From contig OZ176058.1 in assembly GCA_964247055.1 (NCBI GenBank), positions 2,728,001-2,792,000 of the forward strand: 64,000 bases of DNA, read 5' to 3'. Under the pieces are notes generated by a model, which did not search any database, was not told the origin of the DNA, and saw nothing but the letters and a program-made list of their open reading frames with translations. Source of the DNA: Paragordius varius (lineage: Eukaryota; Animalia; Nematomorpha). Positions 154 to 64,000 of the stretch are shown piece by piece (position 1 is the stretch's first letter; every line of letters starts with the position of its first letter). The translations under genes and the position numbers were made by a program.

Positions 154-1477
154 CGGCAAACATGTTAGCAGCCATGAATGGAACGATTGACCCTTGCACA
201 GATTTCTATCAATATGCTTGTGGTCGGTGGGACAAAGAAAATATTATACCTGAGGGTGAACTTAAAATAACACCATTTACGCAGTTGACGCATAGACTGC
301 ATATAAAAGTTAAAGGTGATGACATCTTTTTAACTTTTATTCTTAGATCACAATTGTCCAACACGCCCTCCTAAATATATCTATGCCCGCGAGATATTAT
401 AAATAGAAAATTTTACGAACTATACCATTTTCAACCAGACGCAACATTTTTTTTACAAACGCAACATTACAAATGAGAAAATGTTGCGTTTGCTAGGAAA
501 AAATGCTTTTGATTGAAATATTATAAAATTGATTTTATTAAACAACTTTCCTGAATAAGTCTTTCCGAATTCAGCTATAAACTAAAAAAAATTTGAACAG
601 TCTTATTTTTGGTTAATAAATATTAATGTCCATTTCTTTCACGATAGCGGCCCTCAAAGCGCTTTGTGTTGGACAACCCTAGTAACTGATTATTTTATGA
701 TCGTAATGCGACACTTGTGTAGTTAATATTAATAATTAGAACATTTATATGGGTAATAAAAATTTGCACAATGAATTTGCTAAAGATATGTATTAGGTGT
801 TTGCAAATCACATTATTTGTCACCAAATGGTTATACACTAGCGTATGTTATAAAAGACGACTTGTGCATAATGAAAAAACCAATTTAATATTGTAGGATA
901 GGAAACTAATTGTTTAGTTTCAATTTGTTGTTTTTAACCGTACGCTACTGTATTTTGCCAAAAATAATGTGAATTAGTTAACTAATATTTTGTATGTGAA
1001 AATGTAATGTTTCGGTTTTGGTTAAAATATTTAATTAATACAACTTACTGTTTAATTGAATTCGTCATAAATAAAATCGAGTTTGATTGGTTTTATCTAA
1101 TAAATGTATAAAAATTTGATTTTTTCAAAATCTAACAAATTTGCATTTAATATCATGGATAGTTAAATTTAAAATTATTTAAATTAATTTATTTCGCTAA
1201 TTAAATAACTTAAACTATATTAGCAGAAATCAAAGTTCTAAAAAGTATGGTTGTCTTTTACAAAAATATTTGTCTTACCTTTAACGTTTTATCCGTAAAT
1301 CCATTAGAGTTTATTTGTGGAAAATAAAATGCCCACGTAATATTTACTATGTGAACACACTGAAAATTTTATTTTATTTTTAATTTTTAGGCATTTTAGA
1401 GGAACCGTTTGATGAAAAAGTGGATCGCCCTTCAATCATTAAAGCCAAAAAGTTTTATCAATCTTGCATGAATGAAA

Positions 1478-1517
<40 letters not shown>

Positions 1518-4500
1518 GTTAATTTTTACGATTCCATGTAAACTTAAATATAATTGATTAAAAAAATAAATTGGAAAGTTAAAAACCCTTCAATTGTATT
1601 ATTTATTCACAGAATAATTTGGTGCTACTTAGAACTCGTCAAAAAAATTATTTGATTCCAGTGTGTTGTTCATAAAAAAATTTGCATTAATATTTTTTAT
1701 TTCTTTCTCAGAAAAAATTGTGAAAAAAATCTTTAGAATTTTTAATATAGCGGATGGCGAATATTTAAAATAAATGAATTTCACCTCATGTGAAAATAGA
1801 GAATTGAAATTAAGCCTAAATGATTTGGAAAAAAGAGTATTTATTTTTTATTTTATCGCAAGATTATCCAATTTTCGTAGTTAACTATCAAATTATTGTT
1901 TTCGTTTTTTCTAGAAAATATCGAGAAAATTAAGATAAAACTATAATCGAAAATTTTATGAATAAATTTAAGAAAATAGCGAATATTAGTAAAGTTTCTT
2001 AATGGAAACGGGAAAATATTTATAAAGGCGGACAAACATTATAAAAAGTATTTTATAATTCCTATCCAGTATATATCGAGAAAATGAAACCTAGAATCGC
2101 ATACTTAAAAAATGCCATTGATCTTTTTAAGATCTAAAAAATTAGGATGGACAAAACTATTTTTTTGGTAAATGAAAAACATTTTATAAAGGAATTTCAT
2201 TTTTATCAGAAAACATAGAAAAAATAAAGCTTAAACCATCAATCGAATTTAATCAATATGGGGGATGACTATTATTAGGGGAAATCAAACCAATTAAAAT
2301 TCATAGGATGACCAAATATAATAATTTAAAACTTAAGCTGAGAAGTTTGACCATAAAGATATATTTCACAATAATGATGAGTTATATTGGCCCGAAATCA
2401 CATAATTTTTTTGTGGGGAATTAATAGAATTTTTAAACTATGTGTCAGGAATTGTCTTTATATTTTAAGAAAATAACAATATTAATACCTTTATTTAAGT
2501 CACTAAATGGGAATCAATTTTTTAAAATTATTTTATGTGTATCTTTTTTTTCCATAAAAATTATTTTTTTTTCTAACAGAAAATATTGAGAAAATAAAGA
2601 TTAAACCTTTAATCGAATTCCTGAACCAACATGGGGGATGGCCTATACTGGCAAATTCAAATCGGAATTTCGATAATCACGTGACGGCTTGGAACTCGTC
2701 TGCTTTTGATCCCATTCAGACGATTGCACGTCTCAGGAAACATCGCCTCAATATTCTTATTCATGAATCAGTTAATCCGGATAAAAGAAATTCTTCACAT
2801 TATATAATTGGGGTAAATTTTTACATAAATTTTTTAATTTTTGAAACAATATTATTTTATTGTATAAAATACTGTAACAAAATTTAAAATATACAGACAA
2901 AAAAGTTGCTGAAAAGCACTAATTTTTAAACTTTGTTAAATTTATCGTTATAATTTGGAGATAAATGATTGAGTGTATTACCAATTTATATTACTAAAAA
3001 TTTTACAACCCAAAAACGATAGATTATATTGAAAAAAATCTAGTTTCGAAAAAAATAAATGTAAATAGACTTTTGTCTTTTAGAATAGACTCTTAAATCT
3101 AAAATTTATTAACTACAATTTTGTTTTAGTTTATATATAAAATTATGACAGCTTTGCCTGAATTAAATTTATTACGTTATACTCCAAAACAAAATTTTTT
3201 TGTGGTTAGTTTAAATTTAAAACAACATCTTTTTTGCCATAAAAAAATTAGGTACCATAGAGGTATCCCTGATAACCAAATATTTTTATAGTTTATTATA
3301 ATAAAACTTTTTTATATTGCCTAACACAAACTCAGTTAGATCAACCCAAATTCCCCTACCAACGAGACCTAAGGGCCATGGATAAAAAATTCTTAAATCA
3401 TTACTATGGCTTTATGCTTGAGATTGTGGATTATTTCGGAGTTGAAAGGCATATTAATGAAGCCTCTATGAAAGATGTACTTGCTCTCGAATATCAATTA
3501 GTTAATGTAAGAGAATATTTTTCGTAACACCATTTTTAGTTAGTTAATTTTCAGTTTATTAAACTACCTTATATCATTATACACGGATTTAACAATCAAC
3601 AATATATACATCTCAAATTCACTTTTGAAAATTTTATATTTCACCGTTGAAAAACTCAAACTTAATATAAATTATATTTATTTATGTAAACAAAATTCTT
3701 GTATTATGTTGATTTAATTTTAATAGCCCTTGAATATCAATAAGTTATAAGTATTATGTCATATTTTCATTTTAATTTTTATTAATACCTGGGTAAGCAA
3801 ACCGCGGCCCTAAAAGTATGCTGTTTATGGCCCTAAATTATTTATAATATTTATCTCAGTATGTATATCTGCAAAGGTGTCAAACAGCTATGAAATTTTC
3901 ATTTTCATTATATGGTGCACAGCCTTTGAGGCAATATAAATATATTTTGTGGGGCCCTTTAAAATTTTTTGATATCATTATTTAACGAATTTAATAATTG
4001 TAACTAAACAACAACATTAAAAACTTTAAATTCATCCTAAATCTATTTAAATGAATCCTCAAAAATTTTAGAATCACCTCTAAATTCAAATTCACCCTAA
4101 AATATAATATGGTGTTTTCGGGCTAATATAACTCATCATTGATTTTAATTATTTCTCTATTAGGTTAATTTATATTTTCTTTTTTTAAAAAATATAAAAA
4201 ATAGCTACGAATATTTATTATTAATGAAAGTATTAAAAACAATATTTTACACCTCAAATTCACTCTCGAACATTTCAAATTTCTCCTTAAAATAAATTAG
4301 TTTTTTAGGGCTATTATAACTGTTCATTAACACTCCATTACCTTTTGGGGTAGATTTATATCCCAAGTCATTTGAAATTCGATCTTAAAAAGTATTTAAG
4401 GTAAGCCGAACTATGCCTTTTTTTATCTTTTTTACACATGCTACATAATTCTTTTTAAAACCATGTAAAATTAATAAAAATCCTCATCTCAAACTTTTTA

Positions 4501-7500
4501 TCACCATTTATATATAATATTTTTATTCCATAATATAACAGGCAAATGTATATTATGGCGGAAAAAATGTATATTATTAACTTTAAAAAGATTCAGGCTA
4601 AACTTCACCAGCAAAAACTTGATATATTTTGATTTTAATATCAGCTGTTCGTTTCAATCGTGTTTTGGAGCTGTCTTAATTTTAGACTCAAGAAGTCACA
4701 AAACTGTAAAAAAATATGAGCTTTTTCGTCTAATACATAAGAACCATGTTTGCTAATTAAATTTTAACTAAAATAACTTTAAAAACAGAATTTTATTTAC
4801 AAAATTGAGCTCTGGAATAAAAACTACCCCATAAAAAATGAAAATATTTTTGAGTGTTAATATTAATAATTTCTATTTCCTGTTAATTTTAAGAGAATTT
4901 TTTACTCATAAAAAAAATAATTAATTTAATTTAAGTTTTACCAACCATATTTATATCGCAAATTCACCCCTGAACATCTTCACCAAATATAAATTATGCG
5001 TTTTTTGTGGGTATACAACTCAACATTAACTATGAAAATTTTTTGATAAAATATAAAAAGATATAAGCATTTTAGATATTCAAACATAATTAATTTTGGG
5101 GTAAATTTTGATTTTTTAAGGGTGAATTTGGAATGTTCAAGGATGACATTAAATTGTTGGCTGAAATTGAGGTGTAACTGGTATACATACACAGTTTACA
5201 AATTAAATTAGCATATAAAGAAATAAAACATAAAAAATTAAAAATAAAAATATGCTTATTAGATTATTATGTGATTTGTAATATCAATTTTAATGCTGCA
5301 AATATTTGTTTGTCCACATGATTTCAAAACTGGTCGAAAAATTGATTTTTACTTCTATTAAAAATAAATTAGCATATTAAAGTTTATTTAAGGTATATTT
5401 TTATGCACATTTCTTTTGCATTTGCACATAACGACCAATAATAAGTCACTTAAAATCAAAATAATTTTTGTGGTGAAGCCCCCGGTGTTTTGAGTTTTGA
5501 CTGTTGTTGTGAATCTACATTTTAATTTGATTTTTAAAAATTGCCTTTTTGCGAGCATTGATTAATGCTTTGACGTAATAAAAATCTTTATTAGGTTTCC
5601 AACCAATATTAAATTATGGATTTTAAATTCTATAAGTGATTGAGCCTATAAATTATACATAATCAGCAAACATTAAAAAATACTTTACAAATAAAATGGA
5701 ACTAAAAAACATTAAATGAAAATAAACGATTAAAAATACTTTTGGAGCTAAAGAATCGAAATAACCATTGTAATTACGTTTATATGTGCCTTTATAAAAA
5801 TTCGTAACATTATTTTTCTATTATATCGCCGAATTATATATTCAAATAAAAAGAGATAATTTTTAATAGAAAATAAGGGTTAGAGAAAGGCTAACACGTT
5901 CAATTTAATATATTTTAGAAGAAAAAAATAATAATTTTATAATTTTTTTAATTTCGTCCTCATAATTTTATTTTTTTGTATATTTTAGATTAGTTTCCCC
6001 TTGAGAGCTCGACAATCGGTAGCCAAATATTATCTAAAAATGACGGTTGAAGAATTGCAAAACAAAATTCCCAAAGTAGAAGCTTTAATTTATATGATAT
6101 TTTTTATTCATAAAAAATTAATTTATAAAAAAAATTTTAACTTTATAGAGGGCAGTCTTGACTTAAAAAAATGGTAAAATATATTTTTAAACTTAATTTT
6201 TAGATATATAGTTTATATTAGGGCTGACTGAATATCGAATCGTAAAGTTATAAATATATTAGAAAATAATTTGAAAATATTTTTGTATTAGAAAAAGATT
6301 TTGTTTAATAGGTGAAGGGTTTTTATTTTAAACATCTTACAGATTCATTTTTTGATAGGACTAATATGATATATCTAGAAATTATTTAGTAAAGTTTAAA
6401 ATTATACGGACAAAACTTACATAATTATACATTTTTTTCCCCAAAGATAACATCATTTTTAATCTGAAATCTATATATATTATAAATTGTTTTGCCAATA
6501 TTTTTATTAATTATTTTGGGTCAATTGTCAAGACTGTAGCATATAGGTAAATAACACAAATGGTTGAAATTGTACAATTTTCCCTATCTTACAATATGAA
6601 TTTTTTAAGATATAGGATAAAATTTGTTTTATCCTCATACGCTACTGTATAATCAATTGGCCAATGTTCATTCTTTAAGTTATAAGTTTTGTATTACAGT
6701 AGCGTATGGTAAACAAAAAACTTAATCCATAATTTATACACAAAATTAATGCTATTACGTGGAAATTTTTTTTTAAATACAAGCATTTGTTGTTTGCTAT
6801 CATACGCTACTGTATTACCAATTAACCAAAATTAAAATTTTTTTAAACAAAATACTAAAGATTGATTGGATGAAATATTTGTCAGAATTGGTGCCAAGCA
6901 TAAAAGCTAATGATTCTATTGCTGTCCTATCCTTTACTTACTTTCAAAAGCTTGCGCATATCTTGGAAACTACACCGAAAGAGTTTATATTATAATATTA
7001 ATAAAGATTTTTGATTCGAATTTTCAATATTCAAACTTTCTAAAAGAGGTTATATTTAATGCAAAGAATTAAATTCGTTTTTTAAATGAACGTTAACTGA
7101 AACGCATGAATTTGATTAATTATCAGTAAAACGAAAGAAGCGAAATTTATATGAAAATACATCATTTTTTAACTGAATAATGAATAATTACTATCGCTTA
7201 TAAATGCCTTTTTTGTATTATAAATCTTAAAAAGTACAGTCATGTATCCTTTATTTTATCCAAAATTTATTTTTTTCGTTAAATGGGCCTAATTATTTGG
7301 TAAAGAATGGAAAAGACAAGAGCTCTATGGTAATTCTTGTACTTTTTGATCAGTATGATATTATTAATATCATAGAGCTCTTGTTTTTTCCATTCTTTAC
7401 CAAATATTTATACCCATCTAACGAAAGAAAATAAATTTTTTAAAAAAAAAGGGTACATGACCGTAATAAATATATATTAATTCGATTTGATTTGATTTGA

Positions 7501-10500
7501 TTAATTTAATTATTTTGTATAAATAGTTATCAATTTTTCATACGCCATAATCACTTATTTAGTTATTAATTTCCATAACATACAGATAATATAAAGTTTG
7601 AAATAATGCATTCATTTAAAAGCGGTTATTGCTCATGGGGGTTAAGATTATAAGGAATCTTTTGAATAGTTATATCTATTTATTTAGTTTTTCGTAAAAT
7701 TTATCTAAAAAAGTGTGATATTAAATTTTTAAACCACCATCAGACTTATGCCATACAAGTGTATAAGTTAAAAATGATCATGCATTGCATTTCCATAACT
7801 AATTTCATTAAATAATTGCGATGTTTTTAAGATAATTTTATATGATTTATGTTATATTGGATATATATATCAAATATATCCAGAATAACTCATAATACTT
7901 CTTTTATATTAACGTTTTTAATTCACAAAATGAAACAATCGTATGTGCTGTCAAAGGTAACCTTGTTTCACGGCTATAGTTTATAGGCCAACAGTCTCTT
8001 AAAACTGCGCTAAAATCTAAAAAACAAAAATATTTTATTTTATACTAGCTCCAAGTTTCAAAGTTCTAATTCAATAACTTTTAAAAATCAGCCGTCTTGT
8101 TTTTATTAATAAATTCTGCTAGTCTATTTCTATGAGTTTTATATTATTAAATATGATTATTTAAATATGTTGAGAGGAATTTAAAATATAAAAAAATTAT
8201 AATTCGTTAACAGTTTAAATACTCAAAGAAAAGAACCGGTCTAAAACCCCTTTAAGGAAAAAAAATGTTTTCAAATTTCTTGTTTCTTATTCTTAACAAA
8301 TAAAAGTTAAAACGCTAAATTTTAAAATCTCATATTTTATATAAATAATTTGGGGAAACGGGTTTAAAATATTAAGAAATTATTAACATAAGTTAATATA
8401 ATGGCTTTATTCCAAATTGCGTTTTAAAATCAAAATCGAAAAAAACGGTATTGATTATTTTTACGAATAATGTTCTCAGTCTATATTTTCTTGATTTTAA
8501 TCTCAAGATTAAATGATCAAATTTAAGAGCTCTTATATAAAAATTTTTAGAGTCCTAGCCAATTATATAATGTGGAAAACGGTCCATACCTTGTTGCCAT
8601 ACACTAATCGTGATTTGATAGACATCGAAAAAACTTTCAATAAAGTATGATATTTTATATACATTGTGATACTATTATTATTATTCATCTTATATAGTTT
8701 AAAAATTAATTTATTATAAAAAGGGACACATATTTTTTATCCATGATTTTTTTAATGTAAATTAGAGTAAATGTTTAAATTTATTATTGAGTATTTTTTT
8801 GAAATATTCATGACATTTTTTATTTAAAGCCTCGCTTGTATATCAATATTGAGGTTACGAAAGAAATAGTGGATCTTTTTTTATATTTTAATAAAAGAAA
8901 ACACTAATTATGCAAAAATATTTGGTTTTCGCTATTAAATATATTCGTCGGTTACTTTTTTGTTTAATTTTAATATTTATTTTCTAATTAAAAAAACAAT
9001 TTTTTTAAATAAAAAAACCCATATTTTCACCCTTGATTTTTAGTTGGTAAGCCCCTAAATTGTCGCTTATTTAAATATATTCTTTTTTTCTGTTAATGTT
9101 TTGATTTAAAATATGCTAATCTAAAAAACAGTTTTATTAACTATATATTCTTATATCCATGATATTTAGCCTATGTTACATAACACAATACAGCGTATGA
9201 CATGAAACAATATTAGTCCATACAAGAATTAAAAATGTCTTTATTTTGAAAAAACAAGGGTATATTATGGATATGTATATATACAACTAGGCTTATTTTT
9301 TTAAAACAAAACATTTTTTTATTCATTTTTGGACTAATTATGTTTTATGCTATACACTACTATTATAGTTATTTCACAATTTTAATTACCATGTGAGTTA
9401 ATCTACATTGCATTTTATAAATATGCTGCCAGATTGCATATACGGCAAAGAGCATTATTATTGATTACAGTAAAATAGAAAAAATAATCTATTACAAAAA
9501 TATTTAGGAAAAACTGTTATGTAATTATTAAAACATACTTTGATACATTTTCACGATTGTAATCTGTAAAGTTGATTTATTCACGTATGGCAATATGGTA
9601 TATTAAAATAGCGTTGAGCGATAAAAAGAAAAACCAAAAATAAAAAAGTTACTGGCTATTATATCACAAGTTCTTTTTATGTGTGCATGCCTTATTTGCA
9701 TAGACGTTACACAATGGTTATTCTCAACAACAGATAAGCTTTAACACGAAATATATATATAATATCCAAATACAAAATAACTGATGCAACATGAATTGAG
9801 GGTGTTAACAAAATAGAATATTATAACCTTACATTACTTTCCCCCTAAGTTAACCACGGGGGCTGTCGTGTTCGTACATTATACCTATAAGTTTAAACGA
9901 TCGGGAGGCTGCCATCTTCTTAGCGGATATCTACGCTCGGGTAGGTCAGAAACCTCCTTTACCACGTCGGGTGTGGCCTCTACAGGCGTCAGCGATTCTG
10001 GGGCTACGTCTTGCCATGAGGTAGCAGGAGTTGGGGCATGGACTATTTGAGATTCCGAGGTGGGATGGAAGGTTTGTTCGGAGTGGGCTCCCTCGACATG
10101 ACCCTGGACACTTTCGACGCTGGGATATTTATGCTCTATTAAGGGATTAGTTTCGTATGAATTCCTGACCTACGTCGTAACTGATCTGCATGTTTACGTT
10201 TTCGAATCCCTTCCTCATCTTGCACTTCATACGAGAGTAACCCCCTTCTCTCCCGAATGTGACCTGGCCGCCAGCCTAAGGCCATTTCATTTTTAATATA
10301 GACAGGATCGTCTTGTTGGAATTCGCGTTTCGGTTCATTTTCGTGCTCTATAAATTCGACAGGGGTTGTTTTTACCCAAGAGATAGGATTGTGTACACGC
10401 CGTTTTAGGAATATGGCGGAAGGCGTTTCTTTTAGCGAAGAATGCATGCTAGTTCGATACGAATAAAGGACCGTGTTGATAGCTTCATATGCATGCATTT

Positions 10501-13500
10501 GTTGGGTCTTAGTAGCGGCGTATTTCGTTTTTAATGTCTTTATTACTCTCTCTACTAGACCGTTTGTTTTGGAGTGATAGGGTGCTGCACAGATGTGCTT
10601 TATATTCATCTGATTTAGGAGAGTCGTAAATTCTCTTGAAGTAAAATACGTGGCATTATCGGTCACAATTTGGCGGGGAAAACCAAATCGTGCGATGTGT
10701 TTTGCCAGGCAATTTAAAACGCTTTGACTCGTTATTGATTTAAGAAGATCTATCTCTACCCACCGTGAGGCGCTATCGATAGTCACTAACCAATAATATC
10801 CGTCCACCGGTCCAGCAACATCTATATGTAACCTTTCCCATGTCAAACTGTTAAAATTCCATCGATAGGGAAGATTTTCAGGTGCGTTAGGCCGATAGGT
10901 TTGCAAGCCTCGCACCTTTCCACATAATTCGCTAGATCGGTGTCTAATTCGGGCCAAAATACCGAACACCGGGCTTGGGCTTTCATTGTTTTTAGCCCGC
11001 TGTGTCCCACATGCAGAAGTTTCAATATCGCTTCCTGCATCGCTTGTGGTATCACTAAGCGATCATTCAGGTATATCAGATTATAACAACACTCCAAGTC
11101 GTTTTTATGTTTTAAAAAAGGTTTCAGATCTTCGTCGATTCAACTGTTTTTCCTGAGAGCATTTTTAACTTTTGATAACCGTTGGTCAGTGATCGTTGCC
11201 TCTTCGACCACTTTCTTATTTACATCCAGCGTTTTTAGAGCCAAAAATCGTACCTGCTTGATGGCCGCGTCATCTTCATCATCTGGTTGGCTATGCTCTA
11301 TGGGAAGTCTCGACAACGCGTCGGCTAAGTTTTCTTCCCCTTTCTTGTAAAATATTTCATACTGGTACCCGATGGTATTCGATATCCACCTGAGCAGTTT
11401 GCTATTATTAATGTTGTTGATGTCTCTCTTCCGCCCAAATAGTGACACCAGCGGTTTATGATCTGTATATATCTCGAACGGTCTTCCATATATAAAGTAT
11501 TTAAATTTTTCTAGGGCAAACACTATGGCCTTGGCCTCTTTTTCGATCGTGGAATAACCCTTTTCTGCTATTGAACAAGTTCGTGACGCGTAAAAAATTG
11601 GGCGTTTCCCCTGTGGGGTCTTATGAAACAGTATTGCCCCAAACCCCTTGTTGGAAGCATCGGTTTCGATCAACAAGGGCAAACGGTCGTTAAATGGCAT
11701 TAAAGCGGGGGGCCTGGTTAGCAAGCTTTTTGCTTTCGCGAATTCACTATCATCTGCCGGGGTCCACCGCCAAGGTGTATTCTTTCCACTTAACTTGTGT
11801 AAGGTTGCTAGGTGTGGGTGACAGTTTGGTATAAACCGCTCATGAAAATTTATTAAGCCTAAGAACGAACGTAGCTCAGTTTTGTTTTTAGGTGTCGGAC
11901 AATTTTTAATCGCTTCTAATTTTTCATTGGACGGCTCAATACCTTGGTCAGAAATCACGTACCCCATGTATTTGACTCGTGAGATACCAATTTGCAATTT
12001 GTCTCGGCGCAATCGTAATCCCGCCTCTTGTAACCTTCTAAATACTTCCCTTAATCTTTGATCATGTTCCTCCCTGGTAGCTCCGGAAATTAAGACATCA
12101 TCCAGGTAAACACAAATACCAGGTATGTCCTTTAAAAGATTGTCCATGCATCTTTGAAAGATCATAGGTGCTGAAGTTAATCCGAATGGAAGTCGTTGGT
12201 AAGCATAAAACCCTTTGTGAGTTGTGATGGTTACTAGCGTCTGTGACGCCAGGTCTATCGGAAATTGTAAGTAAGCATCTTTCAGGTCTAAAGTGGAAAA
12301 AATTATCCCATTTGCCACTTTGGTGGCCAACTCGTCAAAAGTAGGTATCAGATGAGAATCCTTTGCTAAATAACGATTGATATTAATTCGGAAATCGGCA
12401 CATATCCTAATTTCTCCATTTCCTTTAATTATATTTACTGCTGAAAAAACATTTTTTGGGAATTCTAACCGAAACGCCCGCATCCAATTCATCCCGAACA
12501 CGGCTGGCGGGTTAGTTTGCGTCGCCACGCAGGGCAGGCACTTCTCCTCTTCGTTCAAAACCACTGAAATCATCGATTCGAGTACTTCTATGGGGCCATC
12601 ATTGTAGGTTCGCAAATTTGGAGCTGGGAGCAAACGAGGTCGACCAATATTTACCCAAGTGCGCTTGCCAATAACGGATACCTCGGCGCCCGTATCGTAG
12701 ATAAACGTTGTTGGTATATTATTTATTAATACTTGGATCCGGGGGGTGTTGTTCGGGCTAGTCATGGTGCGGATTGACGGCCGTCGGAACGTTGCCTTGC
12801 ATACTGTGCTGAAATGATTCCATTTGTCGCAATTGAAACACCGTTTTCCTTTTGCCGGACAGGTGGCGGAACCATGTCGATACCCACAATTACTACATAG
12901 CTTTCGGGTTATTTGATTGATTGTATTATTATTATTAACAACTGGTTGGATACTTGAAGGAAGTTCACTGGTATTATTATTGTTCATATCATTATTATCT
13001 CTGATGTTGTGAACCTTTTTATCTTCTAATTCATAGGAATAAGCGATGTCTACAATCGCTTGAAGGGTTACCGGACCCCCGTCCTTTTTGCCATCTGGAT
13101 ATTTGGATTGAATTTCGCGTTCGACTCTGGGATTTTCAAGACCTACCAGGAATAAATCGCGTAATTTTGACTGAATATCCCCTTCGAATTTCCCGGCTTC
13201 ACACTTTGCTTTCAGACGTTCCAGGAAATCCATGACTGATTCATCTGGCATTTTTTTTAATCGGTAGAATTCAACTCGATTTAACCATAGGCTGCTGATA
13301 TGTGAATATATCTGAGTGGCCAAGGTTGCAATTTCCTCCCATTCCATGTCATCTATGAGTTTTGGGTATGCTAAAGTTTCGATTTTCATTATTACTTGAA
13401 TACCGCCGAAAGCGAGAAAGGTGCGTTTCATAGTGGTGCATTGGATTCGATATTTTTGGAATTTAAGACTCTCCTGATGTGACGTATATATTGCGTAAAA

Positions 13501-28649: not shown

Positions 28650-51505
<22,856 letters not shown>

Positions 51506-55758: not shown

Positions 55759-58049
55759 ATATGAATATTTAAATGATGTTTTTTTATTTGTGGAAAGGCA
55801 TTTTTAAAAACCAATAGATGGGTCGCTGTATTGTATTTCTGTATTATTAAAATTAATTAGGACCTACAAATAATATTTGGACATATATCTGTTTTTATTA
55901 TCTGAGATGTCGAACTAGAAAGTAATACCTACTGCCATATAAAAAAGCAATTTTAAACAGCTGAAAAATTTAAATAGTTTGATATAAATTATTATTTGAA
56001 GAATTATTTAGATATGAATAAAAAAAAACATCGTTACAAATTCTGGAACAAAAATTTGTTAAAATTATTTTGTGTTCATAGATTTCCCTCTCAATTACAA
56101 AGTTAATATAAATAGATGGCTCATTTTTATATACAATTGTATAGTAATAAAGGATTTATAATATTTAATAATTAAAATAAATTAAAGCTGATTCGCCAAT
56201 CTAATTAGTGAATGAAAGACAAAATACCCAATATTCTAACTTTTAATATTTTATATATCCTCTCTGACTTTTTTTTATAAGAAAAAAAATAAAATAAAAT
56301 AAAATAAAGTAAAATTTTTACCCTAATTTTTATCTATTAAAAAAAATAAGTCAATTACCTTTTGGGGTAGTTTTATTTAAATAGTTTGAAATGTTAAAAA
56401 TATGCATTATTTAGCTTAGGCTCATTATGCAGTAAAAATTGAAATTATACGGACAAACGTTAAATTATAAAGGCAAATATATTTTTTCAAAAGACAACAC
56501 TACTTTGTCTTAAGTTTTCCTATATATGCTATTTAATTATAATTATACGGACAAACGTTAATATATAAAGACAAATATTTTTTTGAAGACAACCCTACTG
56601 TTTTAAACCTGTTTTCCTAAGTAAGCTATTAATACAAATTATAATATATAATTGATTGTGTTACTAATATATATTTCTATTTCATACTTTTTTAAAAAAC
56701 AATGTATAATTTTAAAAATCAAGATTGGTTGCGTTTTTAAAAAAGATATTCTTTGTATTATTAGGTATTTCTAATTCAATTTCCGCACAATTTTTTTCAA
56801 AAGAAAATGTAAATTTTTAAAAAAACCTCTCTCAAACTTTTTCGCCTGACTACATTATACCAATAAAAACCTAATATGCATATAAATCAGCTGTTCGTTC
56901 AGAAAATGTTTTGGAAATGTGCCGGTTTTGACTCTATAAGTCACAAAACAGTACAAATATAAGTTTTTTATATAATACATGAGAAAGGTGTTTGATATTA
57001 AATATAAATTAAAAAAACTTTAAAAACAGTAAATTATTTTCAAGATTGAGCTTTGGGAAATTAAATTACCCCAATAAGTCATAGTGGTCAAAAAGGTCAA
57101 TATGTAATGAATTGTTAATAATACTTTACTGTAATCATTTAAGCTTAGAGAAAATAAAATGCTATTTATGTAATTATTGCCGGTATAAGCCCAATGATAT
57201 TTCACTCTTTACTGTGTAAATGTTCTATCTGGTTATATTTTACACTTGAAACAACACATTTATTTTAGTCTTTCAACTATATGGGGTGGTCGTTGGTGAT
57301 CCGAAGTTGTTTAAAAGCAAATATTATAAATTAAAACTATTGATTGCATTGAATACAATGATGCACCGAAATATAAAAAACGATTTATTGAATAAAACTT
57401 GGTATTACATAATTGAATAAACTTGAATATTTAGTCTACATGACATGTGTGAATCAGCTAAATATGGAAATAATGCAAAATAAATTTTTTTTTCTGTTTA
57501 TATTAATATTAAATGTCATTTTGATGAAAAAATTTCAATTTTAGCGTCAAAAATAAGGTACAAAAAAGTAAGATTCTATATTGAAAAATAATATTTGTCT
57601 TAATATGTTTTCGTTTTGTCCGTATAAATTCAATTTTTAGTGCACATTTGAGGATAGTAGTACAATTTATTTATGTTTATAATATGATTCAAAATTAATA
57701 GTAAATAGATGGCAAACTTATTACCGTAACTGACATATTAGCAAAGGAAAAATACTTTATAAATTTTTTTAATTGGAAATAATCACAAGAAGAATATTAG
57801 TAATTAAAAAGGCGAAAGAACCCATTCGTTGCAACTTTTAACATTTAATATATCGTCTGTGGATTATTGAAATCATCATATACAATAAAAACAAAAAAAG
57901 AATATTAAATTTAAAATATATGTTTATTTTACTAATTTTTATCCCAATGGCAATAAATAGTACGCACTACAAACATGGTGCATAATTTCATATCTATATT
58001 TTCAGCATGATTAGATTTAAACATATGACTGTGAAAACTACTATTATTA

Positions 58050-58307
58050 CAGTAGAAAGTGAAATTATATGAGTGAAACATAAAATTATAAAGTCAATTA
58101 TCTCTAAAATACAACCTCACTTTTTAAATTATAATGAAAACTCATTGTTTCAAACAGTGGAAATAAAGATGTAAATTGATAATACAAGCAATTAATGTAT
58201 TTTATACGATTAAAATTAAATGACAAAGGTTTTAAATCTCATTGTCTTTGAGAAAAAAATTGTCTTTATACTTTTACGTTTTGTCCGTATAATTTCAATT
58301 ATTACTG
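58050..58307. mobile_element. MITE family B
   Basis: TA|CAGTAG...TTACTG|TA. Confidence 0.8.
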
Positions 58308-61300
58308 TAACATTTTTTGCTAGCTAATTACGTAAATTCGTTAAAAACTTATTTAAATTTTTTTAAAAATATCATTTCTAATTAAATTTATTATTTCTAG
58401 CGGAGTGAACAAATATTTTGGAGGTATGTAATAACAACTGATCATAACATAACTTAAACTTGTAATTTTTTATATTTCTATGCAATATTCCTACTAAATT
58501 TTGGAAATCAACTAAATTCTTAAAATAAATAGTGTTTTGTTGGTAATTTGAGTCTTATGTTTGAAATTTAAAACTCTGAAATGGCTATTTATTTTTCAAA
58601 TACGGCCCCTGAGGCGATTTGTGCTGGCCCCTGCTCTAAGAAATATGAATTGAAAAATAAAAAGAGAATATGAAAAAGACGCAATTAAACAGATTGCAAA
58701 AAATGTTTTGAGAAAGATTATTTTATAATTATACAGTCCGGTTCATATGTGTGGAACCGGATAAGTAGATATACAGTATAAATTAAACAATACAGACAAA
58801 ATGTGAAAAATACACAAAGTCAAATATCATTTTTGAAATATAACCTATCATTTTAGATTTCACAGATAAGTAATAGTAAAATGTAAATTGATGACACGTT
58901 CTCAATCAATTATATAATTTAATGCAAATAATTTGCTGTTTAACAGTAATTGTAAATCTGAATAAATATATAAAACTTATATTTTCTAGAGGATATGAAT
59001 ACGGGAAGTTTAAAACGGTATATAAGAGGGAGAAAATACCAGACCAAAATTTAAAGATGTTTACGAGAAACATTTAAAACTTTTAAAATGAATAGGATTT
59101 TTCAAACACATGTGACCGTTTTGCTAAAATAAATATATTTATTTGACGATAAAATACAATATTATATAATAAAATTATTTAAATTTAATAAAATAAATGT
59201 TTCTATTTAAACTATCATCACAAATCGATAGGATACATATATATATATAATATATATAATTCGTAAAATAATAAAATTTGTGGACCGATGGTTATAATCT
59301 CAGTATCATTACAGAAAATTTTTTATAACAATACCACATTAAATTAACATCTCTACTATTTAAACAATTTAATCAGTTTAAATATTTTATTTTTTTAATT
59401 GTGGGGGGGGGACGATTTTAAAAGCCAATAGATGGGTAGCTGTATTGTATTTCTGTATTAATAAAATTAATTAAGACCTATTAAATAATATTTGGACATA
59501 TATTTGTTTTTATTATCTGAGATGTCGAACTAGAAAGTAATACCTACTGCCATATAAAAAAAGTAATTTCAAACAGCTGAAAAATTTAAATAGTTTGATT
59601 TAAAATTTTATTTGAAGGATTATTTAGCTATGAATAAAAAAACATCGTTACAAATTATGGAACAAAAATTTGTTAAATTCATATTGTCATAGATTTCCCT
59701 CTCATTTACAAAGTTAATTAGATGGCTCATTTTTACAAGTGAACTGTTTTATCTATAAATTAAAATAAATTGAAGTTGATTTGCCAAACTAATAGTGAAT
59801 GAAAGGCAAAATACCCAATATTCTAACTTTTAATATTTTATATATCCTCTGTGACTTTTTTTTATAAGTGAAAAAAATTTAAAAAATAAAATAAAATAAA
59901 ATAAAAAAAATAAAATAAAATAAAATTATTGCTCTAATTTTATCTAATAAAAAAATTAGCATTACATCATATTTTATTTCATATAAAAGATTTCAATGTT
60001 AAAAATATTCTTTCTTTAACCTTTTAAACTCATTATGCAGTATGAATGGAAATTATACGCACAAACGTTAATATATAAAGACAAATATATTTTTTATAAA
60101 GACAACCCTACTGTTTAAAACCTTAAGTTTTCCCATACAAACTATTTAATGACAATTGTAGAATATATAATTGATTGTGTTACTAATAAATATTTCTATT
60201 TCAAACTTTTCGACTTAAAACAATGTATAATTTAAAAAATCAAGACTGGTTCCGTTTTGAAAAAATGTATTACTACTTTTTTCTGTATTTCAATTTCCGC
60301 ACAATTTTTTCAAAATTTAAATTTGTAAAAAAATATCATCTCAAATTTTCGCCTGACTACATTAAACCAAAAAAAACTTAATATGTATATTAATTATTTA
60401 TCAAATATTCGTTCCGAATGTGTTTTTGAGTGCCGATTAGAGACTCTAGAAATCACAAAACGGTAAAAAATATAAATTTTTTTATCTAATACATATGAAA
60501 GGTGAGTTTGAAAATTGAATATAAATTAAAATAACTTTAAAAACAGTAAATTATTTACAAGATTGAGCTTTAGGACATTAAACTACCCATGTCATAGTGG
60601 TCAAAAAAGTGAATATGGAATCAATTGTTAATAACTTTACTTTAATCATTTAAGCTAAAAGAAAATGAAATGCTAGTTTTTTGTGGAATCATTGCTGGTA
60701 TAAGCCCAATGATATTTCACACTTTACTGTGTAAATGTGCTATCTGGTTATATTTTACACTTGGATAGAACACATTTATTTTATTCCTTTAAATATATGG
60801 GGTGATCGTCCCGAAGTTGTTTAAAATCAAATATTTTAAAAATATGGAATAAATTAAAACTATTGTGCGCACCGAATACAATGATGCACCGAAATATAAA
60901 AAACGATTTATTGAAAAAAACTTGATGTTAATTAATTGAATAAGCTTGACGATCAAAATTTAGTTTACATGACATGTGTGAATTAAAATATGAAAACAAT
61001 GCAAATTGTCTTTTTACTGTTTATATTAATAATAAATGTGATTTTATTGAAAAATTATAAAAAACAGATATTTGGCGAAAATGTTTCTGAATGAAAATGG
61101 CGTCGAAGTAGTTTGATACAGAGCTTTTTTCAAAACTTAACTTTATTTAGATATTTTTATTTATAATTTATATAAGGATAGAAGTATAAATTTATATTGT
61201 TTTTTAAATAGATTTAAATAAGGTCTCGGGTTACTAGTTAGTCTTCATAAACTAGCAATTTTACACTAGATGAATTATGAGTAGGTATATATTGCATAAA

Positions 61301-62467
61301 GGTTATTAATTATTGCCAAATATATGCAGCAAAGAGAATTAATATTAATAATAATTAAAAGTGAAAAAAATATACCAATAATTCTGCCCTTTGTTGTATA
61401 TGCTATTTGATAAGAGATAATAACTTTCTAGCTATGTATACTTACTCATACTGTATAATTGCTTCAATTTTAACCCCTATTTATTTTGCAAAAAACAAGT
61501 TAATAAATAAAAAATTTTCTTAAAAAAATATAGTTGTCTATTTATATGTTTTGTCTGTGTAATTAGTAATATTACAGTAAAAAAACGACAAAATCGCATC
61601 CTTTATGTTTGAATGCAGAGTTCGAATTGCAAATAAATAGACAAAATTATTTTATATTCAGCCCTGGTTTTATATGTTTTCTTAACATAATTAAAGTTTT
61701 TCCATATTAATTATTATATAAAAGGGAGAAGAGAACTTAATAAAACACTATCGAACTGAAACCTAAAAAAATATATATTTGAAACTATACAACCTAGTGT
61801 ATATGTGAAACCAGAAAATATAGAAAAACTAGACTAATATATTAAAGTTGGTTAAATGGTTTTATTAAGGTATTAGGTTAATAGCAAAACCATTTCTTTG
61901 TTCATAGCACACCAAAGATTTTACTGTTAAAATTAATATTATACGGACAAAACGTAAAAATATAGAGACAAATATTTTTTTTCAAAAGATCCCTGTACTT
62001 ACTTAAACTTGTTTATAATGAAAAGTGTGAGAAAGAAATGTTATTATAAATTGAAATTAAAAAATTTATTAAGTTTAAAAACAGTATGATTGTCCATTGA
62101 AAAAAAATATTTGTGTTTATATTTTTTCGTATTGTCCGTATAAATTCAATTTTTACTGTACATTTGAGATACTAATACAAGTATTTTTGTGTTTATAGTA
62201 TAATTTAAAATTAATAGTAAATAGATGGCAATTTTATACCTTAACTGATATATTAGTAAAGGAAAAATATTTTATACATTTTTTTGAATTGGAAATAATC
62301 ACAAGAAAAATATTAGTAATTGAAAAGGGAAAAAACCCATTCGTTGTAACTTTTAACATTTAATATATCGTCTGTGGCTTATTCCCATATCATCATATAC
62401 AGTAAAAACAAAAAAGAATAGTAAATATTAAAATATGTTTATTACTAATTTTTATCCAATGGCAATA

Positions 62468-62649
62468 CAGTATACATTTTGATGGTTGCTTATTTCACAC
62501 TATAGTAGGGCAATTTGCAACACATGAATGTATGGAGAAAAGATAAGAAATAATTGTTTATTTAACATTTTGGTGTTTTCCATACATTCCTGTGTTGCAA
62601 ATTGCCCCCTACTAAAGTGTGAAATAAGCAACCATTAAAGTGCATACTG
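62468..62649. mobile_element. MITE family E (TA|CAGTATRCA, palindromic)
   Basis: TA TSD confirmed by the empty site ggcaaTAaata at ~57950 in the paralogous duplicated unit; second copy at 49101-49299. Confidence 0.88.
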
Positions 62650-62725
62650 TAAATAATTATAATACCTAATTTTACAAGTGTGATTAGATTTAAACATATG
62701 ACTGTAAACACTACTATTTATATTA

Positions 62726-62978
62726 CAGTTGTTAAAATCCGTAATATAACGATAAAGGATAATTAAATAGATATTAAATGAAATTATAAATAGAAATTAT
62801 AAACGATATGTGAAACCCTTCGTCAATAGTAATCGCAGACTAGTTTCGTGCTTGTTAGCACTCATCAGTACGACACAACTATTTGACTTGGGATTTTCAC
62901 ATATCGATTTCGTATATTTATCCAACTTTGCAATTTTGGTATAAATGCAGTTGGTTCTATTACGGATTTAGACAACTG
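62726..62978. mobile_element. Foldback/MITE-like element (TA|CAGT termini) carrying the hammerhead
   Basis: 25-bp TIR CAGTTGTTAAAATCCGTAATATAAC / GTTCTATTACGGATTTAGACAACTG (22/25). Inner inverted arms 62801-62818 with 62890-62910 and 62822-62830 with 62878-62887. Confidence 0.8.
62832..62874 (-). ncRNA. Putative minimal type I hammerhead ribozyme
   Basis: On -: GTCGTA CTGATGA GTGCT-AACA-AGCAC GAA ACTAGT C TGCGAT. Perfect core, 5-bp helix II, palindromic ACUAGU helix III, GUC cleavage (C at 62838), 6-bp helix I. Confidence 0.88.
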
Positions 62979-64000
62979 TTATTACAAAACATAAACAATC
63001 CGTTCATTACCATTACTACTATTTACAGTAAAAATTGAAATTATACGGACAAAACGTGAAAATATAAAGACAAATATTTTTTTTAAAAGACAACCCAATA
63101 CACTTTAAATTATAATGATAACTCATTGTTTCAAACTATAAATAGGAAATAAAGATGTAAATTGATAACACAAGCAAAAGCAATTTATGTATTATACGAT
63201 AATATTAAATGTTTTTATGGGTAAAATGAGGTTTAAAAAATTATCATTGTCTTTGAGAAAAAAATTGTCCTTTTATTTTGTTTTTGTCCGTATAATTTTA
63301 ATTCTACCATAACATTTTATGCTAGCTCATTGCGAAAATTTGGTAAAAACCTATTTTATTTTTTTTAAAAAAACACTTCTAATGTATTTAGGGTGAAGAA
63401 ACATTTTGAAGGCATATAATAACCTTTAAACAACTATATATTAAACTTCTAATTATTGATGTTCCTATACAAATATTCTGAATAAAACTTTACAAACTTT
63501 GGCAATTAACTTAATTATTAAAATAAATAGTAATTTATTTTTTTGGTAAATTTTTTACAATTTTATGTTCGAAGTCTACATCAACTTATTAATACCCATT
63601 TATTTTTCAAATACGGCTCCTGAAACGATTTGTGTTGGCCTCTTCTCTAAAAATTATCAAAGTGTTTCCGTACACTTTTATAAAGAAAAAATAAAAAGAG
63701 AATATATAATATACGCAATTAAACAGAAACCAAAAAATGTTTTAAAAAAAAATATTTTAAAATTATACTGTCGGTTCATTTGTGGGACCGGTTATATAAA
63801 AAAACCGTATGATATACAGTAAAAATTAAACAATACAGTCAAAATGTAAAAACACAAAAAATATTATTTTCGAAATATAACCCGTTGTAGATTGCAGATA
63901 AGGAAGAGAAATGTATATTGATAACACGTTAAATTAATTATATAATTTATTGTAAAATGTGTTTATGTAGATTAAAATCAAACTCATGAAGGTTTGATTG

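Follow-up and report, generated by a model that had tools for sequence, protein, structure and literature searches.

A solitary hammerhead ribozyme-bearing hairpin in Paragordius varius is probably a roughly unit-length copy of a high-copy retrozyme-type retroelement family

What kind of mobile element carries a hammerhead ribozyme exactly at the tip of a long fold-back with CAGT-starting inverted ends? The question is raised by a locus near the end of a 64,000-nt stretch of Paragordius varius DNA (contig OZ176058.1, positions 2,728,001 to 2,792,000; hereinafter the window, in whose numbering all positions are given). For this locus an earlier note, made from the sequence alone, had offered two options: a DNA-transposon MITE or hybrid whose transcript self-cleaves at the hairpin apex, or a retrozyme-like RNA that spread inside a TIR shell. 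We find that the element's boundaries, long target-site duplication, copy number and conservation profile all agree with the retrozyme-like option. In our view, 62721–63013 probably represents one copy, of about unit length, from a high-copy retroelement family that is non-autonomous, bears a hammerhead and is of the animal non-LTR retrozyme or Penelope-dependent kind. It looks like a known kind of element and not like a new cut-and-paste transposon hybrid.

On the minus strand, 62828–62879 reads as the complete type I hammerhead that had been recognized there, with the RNA GUCGUA-CUGAUGA-GUGCU(AACA)AGCAC-GAA-ACUAGU-C/UGCGAU (Table 1). All positions required of a type I core are in place—C3–A9 (CUGAUGA), G12–A14 (GAA), A15.1–U16.1 and a C17 at H17—together with an open helix I of 6 bp, including two G–U pairs, and a closed helix II of 5 bp with an AACA loop. 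Since C17 lies at 62838, the predicted cut is C62838/U62837. A search with the Rfam hammerhead models, which the earlier note had proposed, aligns HH9 to this segment with 26.7 bits (E of 1.3e-4 in a 401-nt search and of 0.021 for the whole window). This is under the curated gathering score of 52 bits, chiefly owing to the almost missing helix III, of which five positions are deleted. The HH9 alignment retains the 6-bp helix I and the loop-1 'UAC'; at the level of the sequence alignment, the 3′ side of loop 1, UAC, equals the HH9 consensus, while its 5′ side is UUGU versus the consensus UUAC. The core pattern occurs once in the 64-kb window and in 0 of 100 shuffles, and the exact hammerhead pattern had 0 matches in viral, metagenome and prokaryotic genome collections. 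Canonical metazoan type I hammerheads combine a helix I of 6 bp and a short helix II with a helix III of 1–2 bp and a small palindromic loop, and show poor activity alone but are active as dimers (PMC4209133). Judged by its sequence, the ribozyme is complete and of this canonical metazoan type I design, and it is predicted to self-cleave, efficiently only as a dimer.

Table 1. Features of the hammerhead element and its insertion site (window positions; ribozyme parts are given in RNA direction)
Feature	Position	Strand	Basis
Left target-site duplication copy, 11 bp ACTACTATTTA	62710..62720		Repeat search; single copy in paralogous unit 1
Left distal inverted repeat (the TIR of the earlier note, CAGT at 62726), distal stem of rod	62722..62750		29 nt, 86% complementary
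3′ arm of rod (RNA sense), pairs with 5′ arm, extends helix I	62726..62827	-	Folds; arm-to-arm alignment
Type I hammerhead ribozyme (predicted)	62828..62879	-	Sequence; Rfam HH9 alignment 26.7 bits; motif unique in window, 0/100 shuffles
Helix I 5′ strand GUCGUA	62874-62869	-	Sequence
Hammerhead core CUGAUGA	62868-62862	-	Sequence
Helix II hairpin GUGCU/AGCAC, loop AACA, opening pair G10.1-C11.1	62861-62848	-	Sequence
Hammerhead GAA	62847-62845	-	Sequence
Palindromic helix III ACUAGU (A15.1...U16.1)	62844-62839	-	Sequence
Hammerhead C17	62838	-	Sequence
Helix I 3′ strand UGCGAU	62837-62832	-	Sequence
Loop-1 'UAC'	62831-62829	-	Sequence
5′ arm of rod (RNA sense)	62880..62978	-	Folds; alignments of paralogous contigs that cross the centre and reach both arms
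Right distal inverted repeat, non-terminal	62954..62982		29 nt, 86% complementary; lowest family depth bin of the element
35-nt one-sided tail, inside the insertion; distal loop in circular fold	62979..63013	-	Paralogue comparison; depth bin 62976-63007; contig 62831-63003; circular fold
Right target-site duplication copy, 11 bp ACTACTATTTA	63014..63024		Repeat search; paralogue comparison

The surroundings of the element at 55.8–63.8 kb are nested segmental duplications of non-coding, MITE-rich DNA with 83–94% identity, with unit offsets of ~3.5–3.6 kb and 4.5–5.0 kb; these duplications supply paralogous empty sites for dating insertions. Within them, 57.5–58.7 kb (unit 1) is an older paralogue of 62.1–63.8 kb (unit 2) with ~85% identity, and the hammerhead element is missing from unit 1 near 58040, as had been read from the sequence earlier. 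Excising 62726–62978, the bounds first assigned to the element, leaves ~48 surplus bases relative to unit 1; when the stretch enclosed by the ACTACTATTTA repeats is excised instead, the sequence of unit 1 is recovered. Hence, the insertion is 62721–63013, a segment of 293 bp and 29% GC made up of the hairpin and a one-sided 35-nt tail (62979–63013), and the former bounds are corrected to it. The 11-bp direct repeat, previously described as flanking the element, occurs only once at the paralogous site. An internal control comes from the neighbouring MITE-A (62468–62649, 182 bp), a high-copy element of Tc1/mariner type with the structure TA/CAGTATACATTTTG...GCATACTG/TA (TA/CAGT...ACTG/TA) and ends more conserved than its centre: in unit 2 it shows a clean TA duplication versus GGCAATAAATA in unit 1.

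Compared with its empty site, the hammerhead element thus has an 11-bp duplication and no TA duplication. As the chance odds of an 11-mer shared by such flanks are ~4% in this repeat-rich window, the argument rests mainly on the paralogue comparison. The description of the element as bounded by CAGT-ended TIRs with a TA on the left stands in part: the inverted ends, the CAGT and the left TA are there, but the right repeat is internal to the insertion and the flank of the supposed TIR on that side is TT. A match of the tail to part of the left arm is not significant (p 0.2–0.3), so that terminal redundancy offers no proof of copying from a circle, and such redundancy from rolling-circle copying was dropped as a candidate. 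TTACAGT occurs both at the junction and where the neighbouring MITE-B begins (63026 onward), which may reflect microhomology at integration. Coding capacity is absent from 62721–63013, in which the only stop-bounded frames have ≤59 codons; as queries in the protein collection, these spurious ORFs yielded no candidates. The 293-nt segment is a short, low-GC, non-coding unit free of LTRs, PBS and PPT.

As minus-strand RNA, 62726–62978 is predicted to fold into an imperfect 253-nt hairpin with the ribozyme at its tip (−73.5 kcal/mol, z −7.85). In this fold helix I is extended, across a 3/1 internal loop, by a 9-bp helix containing one bulge, matching the asymmetric internal loop and 9-bp helix drawn in the earlier note. 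The opposite strand reaches −70.2 kcal/mol (z −7.28), with 3 G–U pairs on each strand. Comparison of the two strands found no asymmetry in the fold or in G–U pairs of the sort that would be a sign of RNA-level selection. As both strands fold equally well, the fold is silent on whether symmetry of the RNA or of the DNA is selected. Folded as a circle, the 293-nt unit forms a rod (−74.3 kcal/mol, z −6.4) with the ribozyme at one end and the inverted-repeat stem and 35-nt tail as the far loop; the unit RNA is highly self-paired in both its linear and its circular form. The hairpin has one ribozyme, and its symmetry centre is the loop of helix II.

Such a hairpin could in principle have been created at insertion, by Penelope-style head-to-head joining of 5′-truncated 3′ ends (inverted and direct pLTR fragments) or by snap-back synthesis. 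Penelope-like insertions often come with an inverted truncated copy, a junction palindrome, an 8–10-bp duplication and a 31-bp outer tail (PMC3846280, PMC8557442). The tail of the present element is likewise on one side only, and at both of its outer ends ...CAACTG precedes T(A/T)AT(A/T)A. However, aligned over their whole length, the arms match in only 80 of 122 columns (66%, z 7.3), yet the copy is close to the family majority at the positions listed; moreover, paralogous contigs have the same imperfect arms across the centre, and a single ribozyme lies astride a symmetry centre in the helix II loop. The weak match of the arms, together with paralogues that have the same arms, indicates that the imperfect hairpin was inherited and not made here. 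We therefore reject an inverted duplication made at this insertion and consider a fold-back origin of this type unlikely.

To place the copy in its family, contigs of four public runs were aligned on 62400–63350, the resulting values being summed word depths and not copy numbers. In the two runs of the best-matching organism, the summed contig depth is 1,100–3,600 in the flanks, 150,000–740,000 in the element, 185,000–970,000 in MITE-A and up to 12 million at the MITE-B end. Across the four runs the element has ~100–400 times the summed depth of its flanks, a ratio of depth sums and not of copy numbers. With depths so far above those of the flanks, the hammerhead element belongs to a high-copy family. 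The two runs under other organism labels have the same repeat pattern at lower depth. These runs (X5 and X7) contain the locus itself, X5 with a 157-base piece showing zero differences, and carry both repeat families at low depth; they could stem from this species filed under a different name, from a host-associated sample or from library carry-over. Within the 64-kb window, a search for other copies returned only AT-rich noise, and neither a second ribozyme nor a tandem unit was found there.

The depth profile of the hammerhead element peaks at 62816–62879, that is at the ribozyme, and has its minimum at 62944–62975, in the right inverted end, whereas in the same runs MITE-A and MITE-B are high at their ends and low in their centres. 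In all four runs, the ribozyme segment is the most abundant part of the family and, among the variants listed, the least variable. The tail bin 62976–63007 has a summed depth of 379,000, and one paralogous contig spans 62831–63003, with element and tail contiguous. The tail is thus part of the family and the right 'TIR' is internal. Spill-over from MITE-B as the source of the tail depth was ruled out, spill-over beside MITE-A being <0.3%. Among the contigs listed, the long paralogous ones (390–1,964 nt) have only ~62805–62956 in common, from which it follows that the distal arms vary between subfamilies.

Between 62792 and 62892, the sole variant among those listed is 62836 (91 less-supported ones lie outside that list), which turns a U–G pair of helix I into U–A; variants 62791 and 62906 give wobble pairs in the rod. 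These paired-position variants keep their pairs, which lends weak support to the predicted fold but is not a covariation test. The copy differs from the family majority at a few of the positions listed, and at 62971 the majority base improves the complementarity of the inverted ends. At least two paralogous contigs break at 62836/62837, the predicted cleavage site; copies of self-cleaved RNA would show such breaks, but the palindrome makes the alignments uncertain.

The family data also bear on whether the hammerhead is a chance motif within an ordinary palindromic repeat. Its score under the Rfam gathering threshold and its whole-window E of 0.021 would allow for this. Such a coincidence would nonetheless have to account for all the core positions, the G10.1–C11.1 and A15.1–U16.1 pairs, C17, the 6-bp helix I and the loop-1 UAC, for their absence from the shuffles, and for the abundance and constancy of precisely this segment in four runs. 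We regard it as extremely unlikely.

The same data weigh on the first option of the earlier note, a Tc1/mariner-type MITE or a hybrid rod with transposase-recognised CAGT ends, which would move as cut-and-paste DNA and have a transcript self-cleaving at the tip. The 29-nt inverted ends start with CAGT as in two real MITE families within 400 bp, a TA stands at the left end, the 253-bp size and high copy number are fitting, and the family majority base at 62971 raises the complementarity of the ends. On the right, though, the flank is TT, and the empty paralogous site demands an extra 35 nt and an 11-bp duplication; this extra tail is high-copy as well and, in a paralogue, adjoins the element without a break. 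Conservation is greatest in the centre and smallest at the right end, the reverse of MITE-A and MITE-B in the same runs, and the long paralogous contigs among those listed share only the central portion. TACAGT is, moreover, a common string, with 51 occurrences in the window versus ~36 expected from base composition. With no TA duplication, a right 'TIR' that is internal and followed by a 35-nt tail, and termini that are least conserved, the MITE or hybrid option does not hold up, and we consider it quite unlikely.

Several other elements lie in the window. The MITE-B family, with ends of the form TA/CAGTAAAAATTGAAATTATACGGACAAAACG..., is represented at 63026–63308 and also at 58050–58309, 56430, 49556 and 35057; its terminal 80 bp have a summed contig depth of 2–12 million, the highest in the stretch, and some contigs have 58–61-bp joints at which the alignment goes back, suggesting tandem copies of the terminal part. 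The palindrome of MITE-A has a weak, below-threshold Rfam hairpin match (MIR1507, 29 bits). A palindromic hairpin at 7301–7399 matches the mir-3202 model on both strands with 43–46 bits, below the gathering score of 90, and is probably another inverted-repeat element. On the minus strand, 10139–13431 is a Ty3/gypsy-type LTR retrotransposon with a 763-aa gag-protease-RT-RNase H ORF and a 276-aa integrase ORF in separate frames; the best relative of its pol region (11140–13431, minus strand) in a large protein collection is 46% identical. The end of an ORF at 51275–51505 (minus strand) resembles the N-terminal exon of glucose-6-phosphate isomerase (GPI), the gene for which would then start near 51.5 kb and run along the minus strand. 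The hammerhead element is ~11 kb upstream of this first GPI exon, the GPI assignment being by resemblance.

This neighbourhood raises the prospect of a hairpin locus used by the host, in which a read-through hairpin RNA with a ribozyme-cut tip would feed small RNAs or control a gene nearby. Either strand can form a stable hairpin, and the ribozyme strand is that of the putative GPI gene with its first exon ~11 kb away. Against such a role, the locus is one of very many copies, a recent insertion missing from its paralogue and set in non-coding, MITE-rich surroundings; the element is in no RNA run searched; and the monomeric helix III would be too weak for efficient cleavage (PMC4209133). Host use thus appears very unlikely.

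We therefore return to the retrozyme or Penelope-dependent copy, for which the following course can be proposed. Master copies, present as tandem arrays or Penelope-like-linked elements, would be transcribed on the hammerhead strand, with an expected tandem unit junction of ...CCATT/TATTACAGTTG and a period near 290 nt. Neighbouring ribozymes in the transcript would pair via the palindromic ACUAGU into a dimeric helix III, and a unit-length RNA would be cut out. This unit RNA, whether linear or ligated into a circle, would fold into a rod with the ribozyme at one end and the inverted-repeat stem and 35-nt loop at the other. A reverse transcriptase acting in trans could then copy it at a staggered nick in AT-rich DNA, leaving a long duplication and a one-sided tail. 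The 'TIRs' would accordingly be the distal stem of the RNA rod and not transposase-binding sites, and the structure observed is what would result if a circle were opened at the far loop and copied for one turn.

Under this reading the copy at 62721–63013 is most likely an inert offspring in non-coding, MITE-rich DNA: with one ribozyme and an unstable helix III, the locus cannot release a unit RNA. A Penelope-like reverse transcriptase, or an ORF combining RT and GIY-YIG, was not seen in the 64-kb window. A more elaborate idea is that the hammerhead rod family has acquired Tc1/mariner-like CAGT ends and is dual-mode, some copies being moved as DNA by transposase and others via RNA. In a milder variant of it, reverse transcription of a circular RNA would always enter at the distal stem-loop, with solo copies being exact one-turn copies opened there. 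We deem this idea decidedly unlikely.

As a single locus the element is ordinary, a dead copy of a known element kind. Beyond the locus, it reveals an abundant and recently active family of hammerhead-bearing repeats in this very AT-rich animal genome, and the paralogous empty site gives the insertion boundaries directly, with the 11-bp duplication and the one-sided 35-nt tail. If confirmed genome-wide, solo copies of this kind could mark the start and end points of reverse transcription on a retrozyme RNA and could tie animal retrozymes more firmly to Penelope-type machinery.

Among known systems, the Tc1/mariner-type MITEs exemplified by MITE-A and MITE-B are similar in their size of ~250 bp, CAGT-starting inverted ends, AT-richness and high copy number. 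The hammerhead element differs from them in having no TA duplication, an internal right inverted end, ends less conserved than the centre and a ribozyme core. Newt satellite 2 and Schistosoma Sm-alpha (cited in PMC7229834 and PMC4209133) are also short, abundant, non-coding repeats of ~300 nt with a type I hammerhead of weak helix III. These are tandem satellites or SINE-like, while the copy at 62721–63013 is solitary; no Pol III boxes were seen in it by eye.

Penelope-type insertions can have an optional 'tail' of 30–40 bp at one end (PMC8557442), show 8–10-bp duplications and inverted-repeat arrangements (PMC3846280), and involve cleavage of AT-rich targets, with reverse transcription starting internally, ~100 nt downstream from the ribozyme (PMC11167929). 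The present element resembles them in its tiny palindromic helix III with expected action as a dimer, its one-sided 35-nt extension, its duplication of ~10 bp, its AT-rich target and its inverted repeats. Its ribozyme, too, is ~110 nt from the 3′ end, which lies 112–117 nt downstream of the cut. Unlike Penelope-like elements, it has no RT/GIY-YIG ORF, either within itself or in the 64-kb window, and its tail is on the 5′ side of the ribozyme strand. Further, in contrast to the 'minimal' Penelope motif with a helix II of 7–8 bp, its helix I of 6 bp and helix II of 5 bp are of the canonical retrozyme type. A recent preprint argues that retrozymes are non-autonomous Penelope-like derivatives, of which monomer copies are common (10.64898/2026.07.22.740005).

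Animal non-LTR retrozymes are low-GC, self-paired units of 170–400 nt with a type I hammerhead and duplications of >4 bp (PMC7229834, Cervera & de la Pena 2020). The view in the earlier note that the architecture was undescribed is consequently too strong, for that study describes self-paired hammerhead RNAs of this very size range, and one such RNA unit, if written out so that its ribozyme is central, is a fold-back with the hammerhead at the tip. Retrozymes have been defined on tandem repeats, whereas this locus has a single unit with one ribozyme. In its type I hammerhead, length of ~290 nt, low GC, freedom from ORF, LTR, PBS and PPT, self-paired RNA, 11-bp duplication and high copy number, it is nonetheless like the animal non-LTR retrozymes.
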